From assembly GCA_010909165.1 (NCBI GenBank), contig VJWM01000205.1:248001-312000 (forward strand): a stretch of 64,000 bases of DNA, read 5' to 3'. The position numbers and the translations under genes are program-made. Below the pieces are notes generated by a model. That model did no database searches, had not been told where the DNA came from, and was given only the letters and a program-made list of their open reading frames with translations. Positions 29,701 to 37,500 of this stretch are shown here, piece after piece. Position 1 is the stretch's first letter. Each line of letters starts with the position of its first letter. The stretch is from Anthoceros angustus (taxonomy: Eukaryota > Plantae > Anthocerotophyta).

Positions 29701-31481
29701 ACGACATAATCGTGGCAGTAGATAGCTTTGGGGTTGGCATTCGTGGGTTCTAGCCCCCTGGCTCTTGGCCCTTTAGTGGGTTGTCAGCCCTCTGTTTGGG
29801 GTAGATGGGTTTTCCCATCTCTTCTTTTTAATAAAGTCTTCATGATTTCAAAAGATTTATATCTTCCTTCTAAAACTAGATTTTGGGCCTATAGTATGTT
29901 TAAGGAAATCTATGGACCTCTTGCAGGGCATCTCGTTGAACTAATATGGCTATTCATGAGAACATTCATGATGAACGAAAATATTTTTGCATTTAGAGAA
30001 GATCTCCACATTATGAAAAGATCTCTCCATTGCCCTATAAAGGGCTCTCTCAACGGCAATCCTTCACAAGGCGACGACAACAAGTCAATAAAACGTATTT
30101 TTCATTATGAAAATCAAGTTGAAGGACTATCGCCACATCTGACGAGTTGACCTTGTTTGACCGTCAACCCAAGACATTTGATGGGTCAACCGAAGACATT
30201 TGAGGGGTCAACATGAAACATTTGGGTAGCTTCAAAATGAAATATCTCATCCATGCTAGAATTATTCATAGTCTCTGTCTTCTCCAAAATACTTCAATGT
30301 CATCTTCATCCACCCTAAAATATTCCAAAGTCATCCACCTTAAAAATAATATTAAAAAGGCCCTAAAGATCACAATAGGAAGAAGAAGAATTCTATAAGC
30401 ACTTTTGCTAACCATAATTTCTCATTTCTTGACTCCAACTTCATTGCCAGCTTGAGGTCACCACTCTTTCCCATCCTGTGCTGAAAAAGGTTTTGCAGTT
30501 GCACCCTCCTATTACCGTACCTAAAGGGTGACCGAGACTCTTTGGCTGTGCCCTTCTTACTAGGATTATATCCTGCGACACCTTCTCTTGATATGTTTTG
30601 ATTGTAAATCTTAAGAGTGTTGGTTGCAAATCTTCAGGGTTCTTTGACACTTACTGGTAGCTAGCTGATCATCTTCGTACATTTTGGTTGCAAATCTTGA
30701 GGTTCTCTTTGACACCTATTGGTATCTGATCTTCCGGGCTCTCTATCCATGTCTTTGGATCTAGACGTCTTCTTCCGAGATCTCTTACAATTCGACTTTC
30801 GGGGTTCTCTAGCCATTTCTTTGGAGGTAGATGAAGCAAAAAATATCTGCCGTCATCAATACCAAACTCATTTTGAACAGCCTTCTTCCTCAACCTTTTA
30901 CAACCAGCATATATGTTGTGTGTTGTGTTGTGTGTTATTAGAGGATCGGAGGATCTTGCACCTCAGCTTTTGTATCATTGGTTGGCAGCTTATGCTCGTG
31001 TCGCTTGTTTTGCGCTAACTCAAGTTTTGACACCAGTTTCTTTTCCGGCGTCGTACTCGGAGATCTCTTACGACTAAGCTTGTGTGTTGTTTGTTCCGTG
31101 GTGCGCTATTCGGAGGACTCTTGCAACTCGGCTTGTGCATTACTGGCAGCTCATGCTCGTGTCGCTTGTGTTGCGCTAATTCTATTATTTGTAACGTGTC
31201 CGTCCTCCAGTGATCGCCAACCCATGTACCTCTGATGGGCAAGTTGGGGTTTCACAAAGCTGGGGTTTCGCGAAGTTGGGCTTCCGCAAAGTACAGTACT
31301 TACATACCTATAGGGTTCGGCAAAATATGGGGTTCCGGAGAATACACATGGGGTTTCGCAAATTGGGGTTTGGATTTTAGGTTCAGACAGCCCACGGGTT
31401 AATCATGCTGGGCAAGAGAGACAAGAGGGCCTTCTGGCAAAGATCCGCGCTTCTGCTCGTTCACAACTGCTGGAAGTAGAG

Positions 31482-33417
31482 ATGGCCATGGCTCCTGGAC
31501 CGGCAGCGGCACCGGGCGGGGGCTCCGACGCGGGACGCAACGTGGGAGCAGCAGACGTCAAGCCGGAGCCCGGCGAGGAGGCGCAAGCGCGACAAGAGCC
31601 CTTCTGCCCCTACCCCATCCCCGCCTTCATCAGCATGGAGCCGGACCGGAAGAAGGGCAGGCTTGACGGCTCAGCGGTGGCCGTGCTGGCCTTGGCCAAC
31701 AACGCGAAGGTGGCGTCCCCCTATCCGGACTGGACATATGCCCGGGACCCGGAATTCACCAAAGTCCTTAACGGGGAGCTGGACTTGCGAAAGGACGGGT
31801 GTTACAGGGACCAGTGGACTCCGCCCTTGGTGCACCACCTTCTCCACTGCTATCAATCGGTGCAAGTTTCTCGGCGCGCGGAATCCTTCACCAAGGTGGA
31901 GTGGCAGGAGCTGGCTGTTATGCTCACTTCGCATCCGGATTGCAATCCCCCGAAGACTTGGAGGGATGTGCGCTCCAAATTCGAGAAGCTGAGGAGGCGG
32001 TTTCTGTCGGAGAAGACGGAGGCCAACTCCCGCTGGCCTTACTTCGCCGACATGCTTAACCTGCAGAACGCAATCGACCGGGTGGAGAGCGCGGATTCCC
32101 CCGTCCAAGGTCGGAGGCAGTGTGTCCTTTTCGTTGTCGTTTGGCTTGAATGGCTAGGTTTGATTCAGTTTCCCATCCGAATTGCTCGCCTGTGTTTGCG
32201 CAGGTGCCCGGATGCTGTTGAGCTTGGAACCAGGTGCCGGGCCAGGAGACAGGCTGAGTCCGCTGGCTCGTCCGGCTCCTCTCGCTCCAGCTGCTGCTTC
32301 TCAACCTTCTCCTCCTGCGCCTGCGCCTGCGCCTGCTGCTCTGCTTCTTCCTCCCGTTGCGGCTCCTCCTCCACCTCGCGTCACTGTGGCTGCTCCAGCT
32401 CAATGTGCTGCCAGCGGGGCCGGCACGGAAGCCGCGGTCACCTCGGTCTCCTCCAGGGGCGCTTCTCATCCTCCTCTGGGCGCCAGCGGCATCTCCTATC
32501 CTCCGGCTGACAGGAGGTTCAGGGAAGTTTGTCTGTCCATCAGGAGCAGGATATCCAGAGCGCCGGTGTATGGAGCGTATTGTGCAAGCTTCTCCCCGAT
32601 GATTGCCGAGATTTTGGGGCTGGCCAAGTTTGATTTCGTGGTAGTGGATTTGGAATACGGCCCCTGCGACCATGCTCACACCCTGCCCGTCCTGCACGCG
32701 CTGGCATCTGCAGGGTGCCCGTCCATCCTCAGGCTGCCCGCCAGGCCTTCTGTGCAGGTCGTCCGCCGGGCGGTGGACTTGGGGCCGTCTGGTATCATGT
32801 TTCCGGACATCGACACTGCCGAGGCTGCCAGGAAACTGGTGCTGGAGTGCCGGACCAACGCTGGCCGTCCCCTGGTGCGGTCCTCCTTCTACGGCACTGC
32901 GGCTCGAATGGACGCCAACGAGCTATTTATCATTTGTGAGGTGAGTTCCGTCACGGCTTTGAGCCATGTGGCTGAAATTGCCTCCGTCGAGGGCGTGGAT
33001 TGCATCCAAATTGCGCCCTTGGCCTTGCGCGCGAGCATGGGTATTTTCCATGGTAATTTCCACAACCTGCACCCTTGCACCTACGGTTGCTAACTTGCTG
33101 CCCGCTAACCTTGCACTCGACTCACATCGTTGCCTCCTTTGGCAGACATCAACCAGCTTCATGAGTTCATGAGGAAAGCAGAGGAAGCCGTGATCAGCTG
33201 CAATGCTCGTCGAAGGACGCCGGTTTATTTGGCAGGGTTAGCGAATGCCGAGTTGACACCCGCCGCTCTGCTGAACTTAAACTATCACATGGTTTCAGGG
33301 GCCTCGGACATTGCTCTCTTGAGGGATGCTGCTATGGCAGATGTCGCCAACAACAAGTTCGGGCGTGCTCCTCAACCCAACTCCCTGACTGTGAAGCCCG
33401 AGCTCGGTACAAGCTGA
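31482..33417 (+). CDS. Fusion protein: trihelix (Myb/SANT-like) DNA-binding domain, Pro/Ala-rich linker and HpcH/HpaI aldolase fold with degenerate active site. Predicted exons 31482-32109, 32204-33040, 33146-33417 (578 aa).
   Basis: Trihelix: QWTPPLVHHLL...EWQELAVML...PPKTWRDVRSKFEKLRRRFLSEK...RWPYFADM. Aldolase: FDFVVVDLEYG, ILRLP, AVDLGPSGIMFP, VEGVDCIQIAPLALRASM, YHMVSGASDIALLRDAA. Both GT-AG introns keep the frame (1737 nt total). Confidence 0.85.
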
Positions 33418-33489
33418 GTAGGTGACTGGCACTGGACTGGGCATTCAGACCAACCTCAGAAACCCCCCCCGAGTCAACGGATCAACCAT

Positions 33490-34570
33490 TTTTTCCCTCT
33501 TCCTGTTCATCAATCATATTTTGGCAAGTCAAGGGAGCTCCGAGAGCTCACGAGCCGGCAGTAGCAAGGACCAGGTTTCTTTTATGGAGCTGGTAACTAG
33601 TGGTACATCATGTTAAGGGCCAGCCTGCAGGAGGGAGACATGCTGATCGAAAGGACTTTCCAGGATGCAGGGCAGAGAGCTGAAAAGAATCTCCATGGCG
33701 TGCAGGTGTTTGCTGGGAGAGCAAGCACACCACTTGGACGTCACGTCATAATTTATTGAAGATGAAGGCTGGATCCTCCCATAAGCCAGGCAGTTCTTTA
33801 GAGAGCGAAGATGATTGGTTGCAGTGAGAACCTTGGAGACGAAAGTGAGTCTAGTGCAGATGATACTGCTGCTTTCCACACAAAACATTTCAACGACATC
33901 TGTTACATATGCCGAGACGTCAAGATCCATTGAAGATGAAGGCTGGATCCTCCCATGAGCTGTGCAGTTCTATAGAGAGCGAAGATGATTAGTTGCTGCT
34001 GAGAACCTTGGAGAGGACAGTGAGTCTAGTGTAGATGATACTGCCGCTTTTAGTCCACATACAAGATCCCAAACGAGAGGTCACACGAGGAATGGCGAGT
34101 CAGTCCTGCCACTTTTCCTTGCTGCACATTCCCATCGATGTCTGGTGAGTACTGTGCCGACGGTTGCTGAGCTCCATGGGAACATGGTAACTGGTGATCG
34201 ACTGGGCTCCGTGGTTCCTACTTTGCTGGTATGAGGGCTCGGAATGGGAGTTCAGCATTGTTTTGAAGGCTTGGGAAGATGTCAGGTAGGGACATTGTGC
34301 CGTCGTTTCTTTCGTTTACGGATGCACGTAGCGCTCTGGTTGACAGGGGACTTGGTTGATTAAGGGTTCAGTCCGAGACAGGGGGCCCTTAAGACAAGAG
34401 GGCTTACTCTTGTCTTGTACTATCCTTTTCTACACCATGGCGGAGATGTTGGTGACTATTGTCTTGCCTTGGCTAGGTAATTTCCCATGGTCGGTGCAGG
34501 CTGAAAATGAAAGATATGTTAGTGAAAGTCGATATCCCGCATCCTGCATCTAACGATGCTGATGCTGCAC
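33490..34570 (+). pseudogene. Decayed partial duplicate of the CCDC57-like gene, 3' part (parent about 6600-7590), with an internal tandem duplication of about 175 bp (33754-33885 / 33929-34055)
   Basis: e.g. GGCAAGTCAAGGGAGCTC and GAGAGCGAAG(G/A)TGAT shared with the parent; stops and indels present. Confidence 0.88.
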
Positions 34571-37500
34571 CGCAGTTGCAGTGGGAATGCACTGCAGTGA
34601 AAACTCCCTCTACCAGATGGCACAGTAGTGTCTGTTGATCTGGATTGAAATCGAATAGATACAGTTTGTCTCTGGCACAAAAGGTGAGAGCCCGACCCGC
34701 TCAGCCGTGTTGTTCTCGGCGCACCGTTCTCGAACATGTTGTACAGTCGGTCCACCTTTGAGAGTGTGGTAGATGGCACGTAAGATGTGTGCAGTCAGAT
34801 AGAGTTGTGTCTGGTAACGGCGCTGAGGTGGTAAGGCATAGGTCCTGTGCGAAGGGGAGGCTGTAAGCAACATTGAGTGGCAGCTAGTGGATATAGGTAT
34901 CGGGCCCCCCAACAGCTGCGATGCCTTGGCAGCGTGTTGCAGTGGCAGTATCAGTATTAGTATCAGTATCAGAGTGCGAAGTGTTTTTGAAAGTGCAAGG
35001 TGTCTTTGAAAGTCATGTGAAGTCTAGTACTGAAGGAAGCCTTGACGAATCCTGTTGGATCCAACCTTACTGCCCAGTTGCAGAGCCTCTAATGCGTTCG
35101 TGTTAGTTGGCGGTACATCAGTGCGCAAGTATAATCTTATTATCCCGTCCTCCAGTTTGAGGAGCCCCACTGCTTTACAGCTCCACACGCATTTTGACCT
35201 TGCAACGAGAGCCGTACACACAGTAGGGCAGGGTAGCTGGGGTTGTGGCAAGTGGTGCAGACCTTCCAGCCTACCGCCGGTGGGGAAGCAGCCTACAAGT
35301 TGTACACACGCGACAAGTAGATGTTGAAGTGTAAAGCCAAAAAAACGTGGTCTTGGGCACCCCCCGCCTTGAGGTGACAAGAAGCAGGGAGGGTGTGCAA
35401 GACTGAAATACTGGCGCCGGTCGCTCTCCGAACACAGCTGATTTTTAGAGAGCCATTTATGTATCTGGTTGATCGAGCACCCTCGGAGGAAGCTAATGCC
35501 TTGTTCTGTCTAGGACAAGCCAGGGAAAATGTAAATGAAAATGGATCTCCCGCGATCCCGATCCCCCACATGCACTTGTCTAGAGTTTTATAATGTACGT
35601 AATGTTGGAGATGACGTTGCACATGGCATTGTGCGGGGCTGTTTAGCAATGGCATGCGTCCTTTTGGGGAACGGCGAGACGCCGCGGCAGCTTGAAAGCT
35701 TGAAGGAAGAGGCCACGATGAGGTGCCTGCCCAGGAAGGTGGAATGTAGGGCCGGCTGTCTGGCGTGTGCAGGTGCGGGGCCCGCCTGGGCCTGGACGCA
35801 CCAGGAAGCTGCCTTCAAGCTTGGGGAGGAAGGCTGGGGCGGGCGGGCCCCGCCTCATGATTGATGGCCGGGCCCCCTGGGAGGCGGACTACATACTGCA
35901 CATACGGTGCGCATGCGATTGCGATCGCGCGATTCTTCGATTGCCATTGCGATTAGCGAGGGCAGGGGGATGCCCAATGCCCAATGCCCAATGCCGCATG
36001 GCATGATTCATATCACATTCCATGACATGCAGTGGTGCGCATGAATCGTCGCCGGCCGCCCGGCCCGGAAGTGGCCGCATTAATGCCCCAGGCTGCTTCC
36101 GGGAAGGAAACGCTAGAGATTTGGCGTGCAAAAGTGGCGGGATATGTAGGAGCTTGAAGGGGCCCGCGCTCTGGGGACAGCGGGATCAATCGTACGCCAG
36201 AAAAGCAGCAAACGCGGGATTGCGGATTGCGGAAGGCGGAATGCGGAAGGCGGAAGGCGGTGCGATGCCGGATCCACTCCAAAACGAAGAAACCTGAGCA
36301 AGAAAACCAGTGGCACCATGAGCGCGGGTCGCGGAGAGAAGCCGGCGTGGAGGCCCTGGAGGGAGCGGGGGGAGAGAAACTCAGAGCGGGGCACCCGGTG
36401 CGCGTAGGTCCCGCTGGTTCACCGGTTCACCCGCGCGCTGGGGCTGGGGCCCTGGGGCCCTGGTGCCCTGGCCACTTGCGGTCCGGAATCCGGATGGATA
36501 ATTGCACGGGCATCGGCTGCCCGGTGCCCGCTGCCCGGATGGATGGATGGATGGATGGATGGGGATCATGGAATGGCATCATGTGCGCGCAGGAGTGCGG
36601 GAAGGGAATGTAACATGTAAATGGTGCGGTGGGGCCCGGAACAGGCCCACTTGCAGGGCAGTGTGCACGCGGGATTTTTTTTTTCCAGCATACACAATTT
36701 GCAAACAGTGGCGGAAATGAGATGCGTCCTCAATGTCAACGTTATGTGCAAGGATTTGACATTTGCGTGTGCGTCGTGAGTGGAGGCAGGATCCGGTGCG
36801 CTCTTGTGCACTACTACGCGTACTTTCTATGTGTAGGATGTCACCCACCAAATGCTCGTACAGATCACATGCAGTACAGGGTGGGGGCCAGGGCGATGAG
36901 ATGAGCTCAGCGACACAATTTCCTCTTCACATTTTAGCTTTAACATTGCACTGGTCTCTCGGGGAGGATCGCATCGTTGCCATGGAAGAATCGCATCAGC
37001 GGCTGCACGGCAGCAGCAACAGCAATCCGCTGAAAAGGGCACGTTGTTGACGCCAATTGACCAGGCTGTCCGTGTAGCTACGCTTGCTGTTGCAGCCAGC
37101 AGCTGGAAACTGCCTGGACGCCTCCACGGGGACGGGGTGGCATCGCTCCCTATGTAACCTTCAACCTTCTATATTGGAAGTGGATGAGGTGACGACTCCA
37201 CGTCTCCCACTCCCTTCCCCTTCCCCTTCCCCTTGTGGCCACGGCTTGTGCCTCTGGTACGCATGACTGCATGAATGAATTCAATCCAATCCCAGGGGGA
37301 AAGGACGTGATCGATTTTGTGGTTACAGGGCCGTGAAAGCAGTGGGCAGTAGCGTAAAAGCATGCTCCCTGTGCCTGTGCTGCTAGCAGCACGCAATACG
37401 CGGTACAAGATGGGGGGCACCTAACCCAACCCAACCCAACCCAACCTAACGCAACCCAATCTGGGCTCGGGCCCCTCCAGTCCCATTGAGCACGAGATGG

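Follow-up and report, generated by a model that had tools for sequence, protein, structure and literature searches.

The gene described here lies at positions 31482-33417, on the forward strand, of a 64,000-nucleotide (nt) stretch of Anthoceros angustus DNA that was analysed as a whole (the window). It encodes a protein that joins a predicted trihelix DNA-binding domain, on the N-terminal side, to an HpcH/HpaI-family class II aldolase barrel whose catalytic and metal-binding residues have been lost. The gene is GC-rich (~0.61-0.64 GC) and is set within AT-richer flanks. Joining the exons at 31482-32109, 32204-33052, and 33146-33417 gives a coding sequence of 1749 nt with no internal stop codon and a product of 582 amino acids (aa), in agreement with a preliminary description of this DNA, which had read the frame as intact over three exons. 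The coding part of exon 1 (31482-32109) supplies aa 1-209 and the first base of codon 210; it ends without a stop codon, so that, as had been noted, none separates the two domains. Intron 1 (32110-32203; 94 nt) and intron 2 (33053-33145; 93 nt) both have GT..AG ends and are both in phase 1. The coding part of exon 3 (33146-33417) encodes the end of the barrel, from helix α6b to helix α8, and a C-terminal tail, and closes with a TGA stop codon at 33415-33417.

Public RNA assemblies were mapped onto positions 30900-34100 of the window. A single 3528-nt RNA contig from the source organism (X1) matched with 0 mismatches at 31415-32107, 32202-33051, and 33145-34100 and extended further. The cuts in this contig fit equally well 2 and 1 places rightward, respectively, which gives junctions at 32109/32204 and 33052/33146 with GT..AG ends. 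Two relatives that are ~5-6% diverged, organisms C and D, each provided one contig (X16 and X22) with both joints the same as in X1; all three contigs skip 94 nt and 93 nt at the two introns and are gapless over exon 1. The frame-restoring 94-nt GT-AG intron proposed from the letters alone is thus matched exactly in RNA contigs of three organisms, and the alternative intron pair 32119/32169 was not seen in any mapped RNA contig. Relative to the window, the sole insertion or deletion in the coding sequence of C and D is an in-frame 15-nt deletion at 32321, within a tandem array of the hexamer CCTGCG (32314-32336) in the Pro/Ala-rich linker. The trihelix domain and the aldolase barrel are part of one expressed three-exon gene and are carried by one mRNA. 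The 5' untranslated region (UTR) covers at least 31415-31481, from the position at which X1 begins with 0 mismatches, and has no ATG; the 3' UTR covers at least 33418-33892, with the X16 and X22 contigs ending at 33840 and 33892.

Domains of the encoded protein

The trihelix family of transcription factors is specific to plants. In the protein encoded here the family's domain (Myb/SANT-like, PF13837) occupies aa 109-203 (31806-32090) and consists of three helices and a fourth that carries a W-P-Y-F motif. The Pfam profile Myb_DNA-bind_4 (PF13837) matched at aa 109-192 over profile positions 1-87 of 89, with 32.7 bits against a cut-off of 27. The N-terminal 209 aa were modelled with AlphaFold from a 2-row alignment, and the model is confident for aa 110-205 only. 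Helices were predicted at 114-131, 138-149, 160-177, and 188-203, with predicted local distance difference test (pLDDT) scores of ~80-90. The aromatic residues of a trihelix domain are present as Trp112, Trp141, Trp160, Phe167, and W185-P-Y-F. The top Swiss-Prot matches of the model in Foldseek were ASIL2, ASIL1, ENAP1, ENAP2, GT-1, and the GT-1-like domain of RNase J. Those with a probability of 1.00 included ASIL2, ASIL1, ENAP1 (root mean square deviation 2.9 over 101 residues), and ENAP2 (2.2 over 87 residues); the E-values are weak because the disordered N terminus was part of the query. Two lines of evidence, the profile match above cut-off and a four-helix model that resembles ASIL, ENAP, and GT-1, therefore bear out the trihelix domain of the preliminary description, which is a predicted SIP1/ASIL-like DNA-binding domain.

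The trihelix domain is preceded by a conserved motif at aa 41-108 (31602-31805; SMEPDRKKGRLDGSAVAVLALANNAKV...DLRKDGC), which is 71% identical in the orthologue P0001 (597 aa; described below). This motif has no Pfam match, no counterpart of it was found in known trihelix factors, and its pLDDT is low in the model from the 2-sequence alignment. With the N-terminal half as query, phmmer found no match among PDB entries. The ESM Atlas returned only generic Myb/SANT and HpcH clusters. Between the trihelix domain and the barrel lies a linker rich in Pro, Ala, and Ser (aa 210-320; 32204-32535) that is 32% identical to that of P0001.

The first part of the HpcH/HpaI barrel, from strand β1 to helix α6, is encoded at 32536-33052. 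Exon 2 alone matched the family profile (PF03328 HpcH_HpaI) with an E-value of 1.8e-20 and, in a phmmer search of solved structures, aligned with 4mf4, GarL (1dxe), YfaU (2vws), and HpaI/HpcH entries. In P0001 the PF03328 match spans profile positions 3-220 of 221. The barrel was modelled on the orthologue (P0001, residues 322-597) from a 60-row alignment, and the AlphaFold model had a mean pLDDT of 88.4, a predicted template modelling score of 0.86, and eight strands alternating with helices. Its sole weak stretch is a truncated loop. Foldseek matched it over its whole length to 1dxe, 2v5j, 7et8, and 4b5s with template modelling (TM) scores of 0.77-0.83. Pfam, phmmer, and the model of P0001 thus all point to a full-length barrel, which had been described as plant-type and near-complete.

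HpcH/HpaI enzymes coordinate a metal with two acidic residues, bind pyruvate by way of this metal, and form hexamers (dimers of trimers) through helices α1, α2, and α8 (PMC8560999). The catalytic His, His45 in Escherichia coli HpaI (EcHpaI), is on the β2-α2 loop, and Arg70 stabilises the enolate. Three substitutions that had been read by eye in the preliminary description proved correct when the protein was aligned with aldolases of solved structure and with canonical enzymes from plants. Specifically, Tyr361 (TAC, 32656-32658) replaces the catalytic His of the D-x-E-H-G motif, with the same Tyr in P0001. The Q-V-E motif has become E-V-S (32938-32946), with Glu455 for Gln147 and Ser457 (AGT, 32944-32946) for the metal ligand Glu149, again identically in P0001. 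Ala483 (GCC, 33022-33024) replaces the second metal ligand, Asp175 of the G-P-x-D-L motif, at which P0001 has Ser. The YPPxGxRG substrate loop, previously described as eroded, lacks six residues at exactly this place (CR-TNAGRP-LVRSS, 32854-32868), and the same deletion is found in P0001. Arg70 is kept, as had been stated, in the form of Arg386 (AGG, 32731-32733; Arg75 of 1dxe), and equivalents of Asp42 and Glu44 are also retained. Having lost its catalytic His, its two metal ligands, and its substrate loop, the barrel is predicted to be incapable of the metal-dependent aldol chemistry of its family.

The exceptional character of these changes was assessed with an exhaustive HMMER search, with the barrel part as query, of 1.84 billion cluster representatives. 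The best 150 representatives were aligned to the family profile (171 domain stretches) and scored at the positions equivalent to Asp42, Glu44, His45, Arg70, Gln147, Glu149, and Asp175. The pattern DEHRQED was found in 97 of the 171 stretches, the window protein has DEYRESA, and P0001 has DEYRESS. Apart from these two, every full-length single-domain protein among the best 150 retains His45, Glu149, and Asp175.

The fusion proteins have kept much of the remainder of the barrel. An alignment of 11 canonical plant sequences has 88 conserved columns, of which 54 are retained in the window protein and P0001 alike and 28 differ in both; the 28 include every catalytic and metal-binding position, and many of the others are conservative (K to R, L to I, F to Y). 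The β2-α2 loop (LEYGPCDxAH) is 90% identical within the fusion pair and 30% like the canonical consensus. Within the pair, identity is 78% in helix α1, 90% in helix α2, and 69% in helix α8.

A further departure from the canonical residues was seen in large proteins from outside the window. P0005 (2521 aa), P0011, P0015, P0053, and P0067 contain several tandem HpcH/HpaI-like repeats, with Gln, Asn, or Glu at the position of the catalytic His and Glu at that of the Asp ligand (pattern DEQRQEE). They form a separate group of atypical or perhaps inactive barrels.

Conservation, rarity, and origin of the fusion

Among the best 150 of the 1.84 billion representatives, P0001 is the only other fusion of this kind. 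It comes from a 2307-nt transcript contig with an uninterrupted open reading frame (ORF) of 597 codons, and it is 67% identical to the window protein over the barrel and 60% identical over the part encoded by exon 3. The two proteins align from a common MAPGP start to the C terminus, with the N-terminal motif, the trihelix domain, and the barrel as conserved blocks and a linker that cannot be aligned. The other close matches are canonical plant aldolases of 346-366 aa, the nearest being Marchantia paleacea KAG6557494 (50%). A word-based search with full-length P0001 returned P0001 itself and two canonical aldolases only, and the ESM Atlas held no cluster with a fused trihelix-aldolase architecture. 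In the literature searched, no paper had trihelix and HpcH together and none connected pseudoenzymes with an HpaI aldolase; mentions of AT4G10750, the plant homologue, were confined to two papers. The architecture is accordingly unreported in that literature and very rare in the databases. It is a new domain architecture within known kinds, namely the trihelix family and the co-option of pseudoenzymes.

Selection was estimated by codon analysis (NG86/LWL85) against the P0001 transcript. The ratio of nonsynonymous to synonymous rates (dN/dS) was 0.16-0.17 in the barrel (~0.17 in the part in exon 3) and 0.17-0.22 in the N-terminal motif; the trihelix domain, at 0.41, had the highest value among the folded parts, and the linker gave ~0.4-1. 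dS is saturated (1.0-2.0), and these values are approximate yet clearly below 1. Comparison of exon 1 with organisms C and D gave, among the differences listed, 30 differences in 28 codons (12 synonymous and 16 nonsynonymous), with a dN of 0.035, a dS of 0.096, and a ratio of ~0.37. The aldolase part is therefore not evolving neutrally, and the ratios mark the barrel as the most constrained part of the protein rather than a decaying remnant. Since an orthologue at a dS above 1 has the same architecture and the same substitutions, the fusion is far beyond chance.

A maximum-likelihood tree of 44 barrel sequences grouped the window protein with P0001 at 100% support; the stem of this clade measures 1.02 changes per site, and its terminal branches 0.32-0.36. 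This clade is sister to the canonical enzyme of M. paleacea (support 86), inside the land-plant group. The long stem and short terminal branches indicate that the barrel derives from a duplicated land-plant aldolase, with a burst of change at the catalytic face followed by purifying selection. Such a burst of change in the active site, followed by constraint, makes the domain-fusion event datable.

The intron positions bear on how the duplication took place. The canonical gene of M. paleacea (L002:3001-4686) has a phase-0 intron at CQ|VE, inside the metal-ligand motif, and its last intron is in phase 1 in codon 295. The CQ|VE intron is widespread, because unspliced fragments of canonical genes from other species (P0009 and P0013) also break after MCQV; it is missing from the fusion gene. 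The codon-295 intron aligns two codons from intron 2 of the window gene, in a stretch with insertions and deletions. A retroposed origin of the barrel was considered and is unlikely, given that intron 2 lies near the last M. paleacea intron and is of equal phase; the gene structures favour duplication at the DNA level.

The canonical land-plant enzymes have Ser/Thr-rich presequences without acidic residues, and their N terminus looks like a plastid transit peptide. Both fusion proteins have an acidic N terminus (PEPGEEAQARQEP in the window protein). On the basis of this difference plastid targeting has probably been lost in the fusion protein.

Possible roles of the fused barrel

Any proposal for the function of this protein has to account for an intact and constrained barrel, an abolished metal-pyruvate site, conserved contact helices, partly conserved replacements, and a predicted DNA-binding domain attached through a flexible linker. 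A non-catalytic role fits this combination best. On balance, and with moderate confidence, we favour a DNA-binding protein that acts outside the plastid and uses the dead barrel as an oligomerisation module, which we prefer, or as a ligand-binding module. Having lost the transit peptide, the fusion protein would act outside the plastid, most likely in the nucleus, with the barrel as a non-catalytic module behind the DNA-binding domain. The barrel would oligomerise the protein through helices α1, α2, and α8, and several trihelix domains would then be presented to DNA at once. Other trihelix factors are said to use a coiled-coil, for which the barrel may stand in. The pocket, which is remodelled yet conserved, may also accommodate a small ligand. 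Oligomerisation is preferred because the family forms hexamers through these same three helices. In our ranking, oligomerisation with multivalent display of the trihelix domain comes first, a remodelled ligand pocket second, and a new enzyme activity a distant third.

Several observations weigh against this proposal. The PF13837 score is modest, and that of P0001 (24.8 bits) falls under the cut-off of 27. Word-based homologue searches with the trihelix half, run with the single sequence (lengths up to 598 aa) and with a 2-sequence profile, returned no relatives. The structural model of the barrel is that of the orthologue and not of the window protein, and the estimates of constraint carry the saturation in dS given above. 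The loop that in HpaI borders the pocket of the neighbouring subunit is truncated and is 39% identical within the pair; so short and variable a loop could alter the trimer contacts. Finally, Glu455, at the Gln147 position, is on the same strand as the lost ligand and two residues before it, and might permit some metal binding.

The gene bears on how trihelix factors assemble on DNA and on whether any of them reads metabolic state directly. As its transcripts confirm, a trihelix domain has here gained a whole enzyme barrel, with the fold kept and, by prediction, the chemistry lost, and selection has maintained the combination. It is a tractable system for the recruitment of pseudoenzymes into the control of transcription, and also a route to what the poorly studied plant HpcH/HpaI aldolase binds. 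If the barrel serves only to oligomerise the protein, the case would be a neat but modest example of domain co-option.

The preliminary description had put forward a candidate metabolite-sensing regulator. In such a protein the remodelled pocket would take up a small molecule, for instance a 2-oxo acid or a different carboxylate gripped by the retained Arg, and its occupancy would alter DNA binding or oligomerisation. Retention of Arg70, Asp42, and Glu44 is in keeping with this proposal. So is the pattern of conservation, in that the β2-α2 loop at the catalytic face is the best conserved loop in the fusion pair (90%) and the Tyr, Glu, and Ser replacements are identical in both orthologues, as expected of a constrained rather than a decaying pocket. 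Dead paralogues of enzymes that act as transcriptional sensors have a precedent in, for example, yeast Gal3. However, both metal ligands are lost in a family that holds pyruvate through the metal (PMC8560999), and the substrate loop is deleted; these losses argue against the canonical Mg-pyruvate binding mode. Furthermore, the Asp175 position varies between the orthologues (Ala and Ser), and the loop at the periphery of the pocket is poorly conserved. We therefore regard a sensor of this kind as possible but rather unlikely. A more specific form of it, in which a remodelled pocket of Tyr361, Cys364, His368, Arg386, Glu455, and Ser457 would be a metabolite sensor that switches the oligomeric state or DNA binding by the trihelix domain, and in which the gene would belong to a small family confined to its lineage, is more tentative again. 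Were ligand binding to prove true, the protein would be a rare eukaryotic sensor and regulator in a single polypeptide, and the sensor proposal as a whole would make it a one-component metabolite-sensing transcription factor of plants built from a class II aldolase. It had also been suggested that the dead barrel might partner the active aldolase; if the canonical enzyme is plastid-targeted, the absence of a transit peptide from the fusion protein argues against this.

The identity of the N-terminal domain admits another explanation. The Myb/SANT-like domain might be a module for interaction with proteins or chromatin, or a domesticated Harbinger-type domain, in which case the protein would be a chromatin scaffold and not a transcription factor. 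The Pfam score is barely over its cut-off, there are overlapping MADF and Myb_DNA-bind_3-like signals, and the trihelix dN/dS (~0.37-0.41) is the highest of the folded parts, all of which would suit a scaffold. Nevertheless, structure searches rank true trihelix factors of plants (ASIL1/2, ENAP1/2, and GT-1) highest, and the conserved aromatic residues and the W-P-Y-F motif of the fourth helix are present. A scaffold is on this evidence improbable.

A neo-functionalised enzyme was also weighed. Here a conserved set of Tyr, Cys, His, and Glu residues would support an activity independent of the metal site, with the trihelix domain as its anchor on DNA or chromatin. Purifying selection on the barrel is strong (dN/dS ~0.17), and the new polar residues Tyr361, Cys364, His368, Glu455, and Ser457 are conserved in both orthologues. 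On the other hand, every family member known depends on the metal ligands, the Glu and Asp ligands are kept in all other full-length single-domain proteins among the best 150 representatives, the substrate loop is deleted, and the proposal is a speculation from residue identity. We consider such an enzyme quite improbable. The weakest explanation is an artefact or a product of decay, that is, a read-through or chimeric transcript of adjacent genes or a functionless pseudogene remnant: a contig from organism B (X2) retains both introns, a contig is an assembly rather than a single molecule and does not prove that every molecule is full-length, and an in-frame ATG at 32212 could start an aldolase-only product, but the spliced single-ORF form in three organisms, the diverged orthologue with the fusion in an intron-free ORF of 597 codons, dN/dS values well below 1, and a trihelix exon that ends without a stop codon make this highly improbable. 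The X2 contig may represent genomic DNA or pre-mRNA. As the main form, a pair of separate genes or a product with the aldolase only, started at the ATG at 32212, was rejected on the same spliced contigs and the P0001 ORF, which join the domains; a minor aldolase-only isoform from this ATG might still be made.

Comparison with known systems sets the window protein apart from each of them. It shares the PF13837 domain, with three helices and a fourth, with the SIP1-clade trihelix factors of Arabidopsis (ASIL1, ASIL2, ENAP1, and ENAP2) and with GT-1. Known trihelix factors have coiled-coil or low-complexity C termini, whereas the C-terminal half of the window protein is a class II aldolase barrel; the latter also has an N-terminal motif (aa 41-108) for which no counterpart was found, and it is too diverged from other trihelix proteins for word-based searches. 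With the HpcH/HpaI aldolases (HpaI 2v5j/4b5s, GarL 1dxe, and YfaU 2vws) it shares the same full-length barrel, at the TM-scores given above. Relative to the canonical land-plant aldolase (AT4G10750-like; KAG6557494 of M. paleacea), the bryophyte enzyme being 47-50% identical to the fusion barrel, it keeps Asp42, Glu44, Arg70, and helices α1, α2, and α8 but differs in having Tyr45, Glu147, Ser149, and Ala175 (EcHpaI numbering), an N-terminal trihelix domain, and neither the YPPxGxRG loop nor a transit peptide.

Arabidopsis RNase J likewise has a trihelix-type domain and an enzyme fold in one polypeptide. It is, however, a catalytically active nuclease of plastids whose trihelix-like domain lies at the C-terminal end, whereas in the window protein it is the fold predicted to be inactive that is C-terminal and there is no transit peptide. 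In yeast Gal3, CtBP, and the bacterial proteins BirA and PutA, an enzyme-derived domain is joined to, or works with, a transcription regulator; none of these is known to have an HpcH/HpaI barrel or a trihelix domain. The bacterial protein P0111 (605 aa) also has a DNA-binding regulator N-terminal to an HpcH/HpaI barrel. Its regulator is bacterial (HTH_IclR and IclR_C), and its aldolase keeps the His, Glu, and Asp (DLEHG, QIE, and GPVDL) and looks active, which marks P0111 as an independent regulator-aldolase fusion. A different arrangement was seen in P0049 (567 aa; outside the window), which has an AIPP2 SPOC-like domain and, after it, a canonical HpcH/HpaI aldolase of the plant type that is truncated but keeps its His. 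P0049 is probably a chimeric or incomplete gene model and not a second kind of fusion.

Repeats and additional transcripts at the locus

The X1 contig continues for 1029 nt past 34100 (~34100-35130), although the stop codon is at 33417. No convincing ORF was found in ~34100-35130, and the extension is either a ~1.7-kb 3' UTR or an overlap with another transcript. The 3' UTR contains a tandem duplication of ~175 nt (33743-33875 and 33917-34050), the copies being 88-92% identical. In the relatives this region shows joints that go back 80 and 83 nt and a 23-nt deletion, which suggests that the duplication varies in copy number.

Only the last ~100 nt of the coding sequence (33317-33417) are matched by second, separate contigs from organisms C and D (X16, 2121 nt; X22, 303 nt), with 8 mismatches and 6 gaps. 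These contigs probably derive from a diverged paralogue of the fusion gene.

Upstream of the gene, from 31241, lie 3.2 tandem copies of a 16-nt unit, AAGTTGGGGTTTCGCA, followed by degenerate GGGGTTTCGCAAA-like copies to ~31380. This repeat is directly upstream of the transcript start (~31415) and may be a promoter element. Further upstream lie a direct repeat (30983-31028 and 31144-31189; 161-nt spacing, 87% identical) and, beside it, a TGTTGTGTGTTG microsatellite at 30914-30936.

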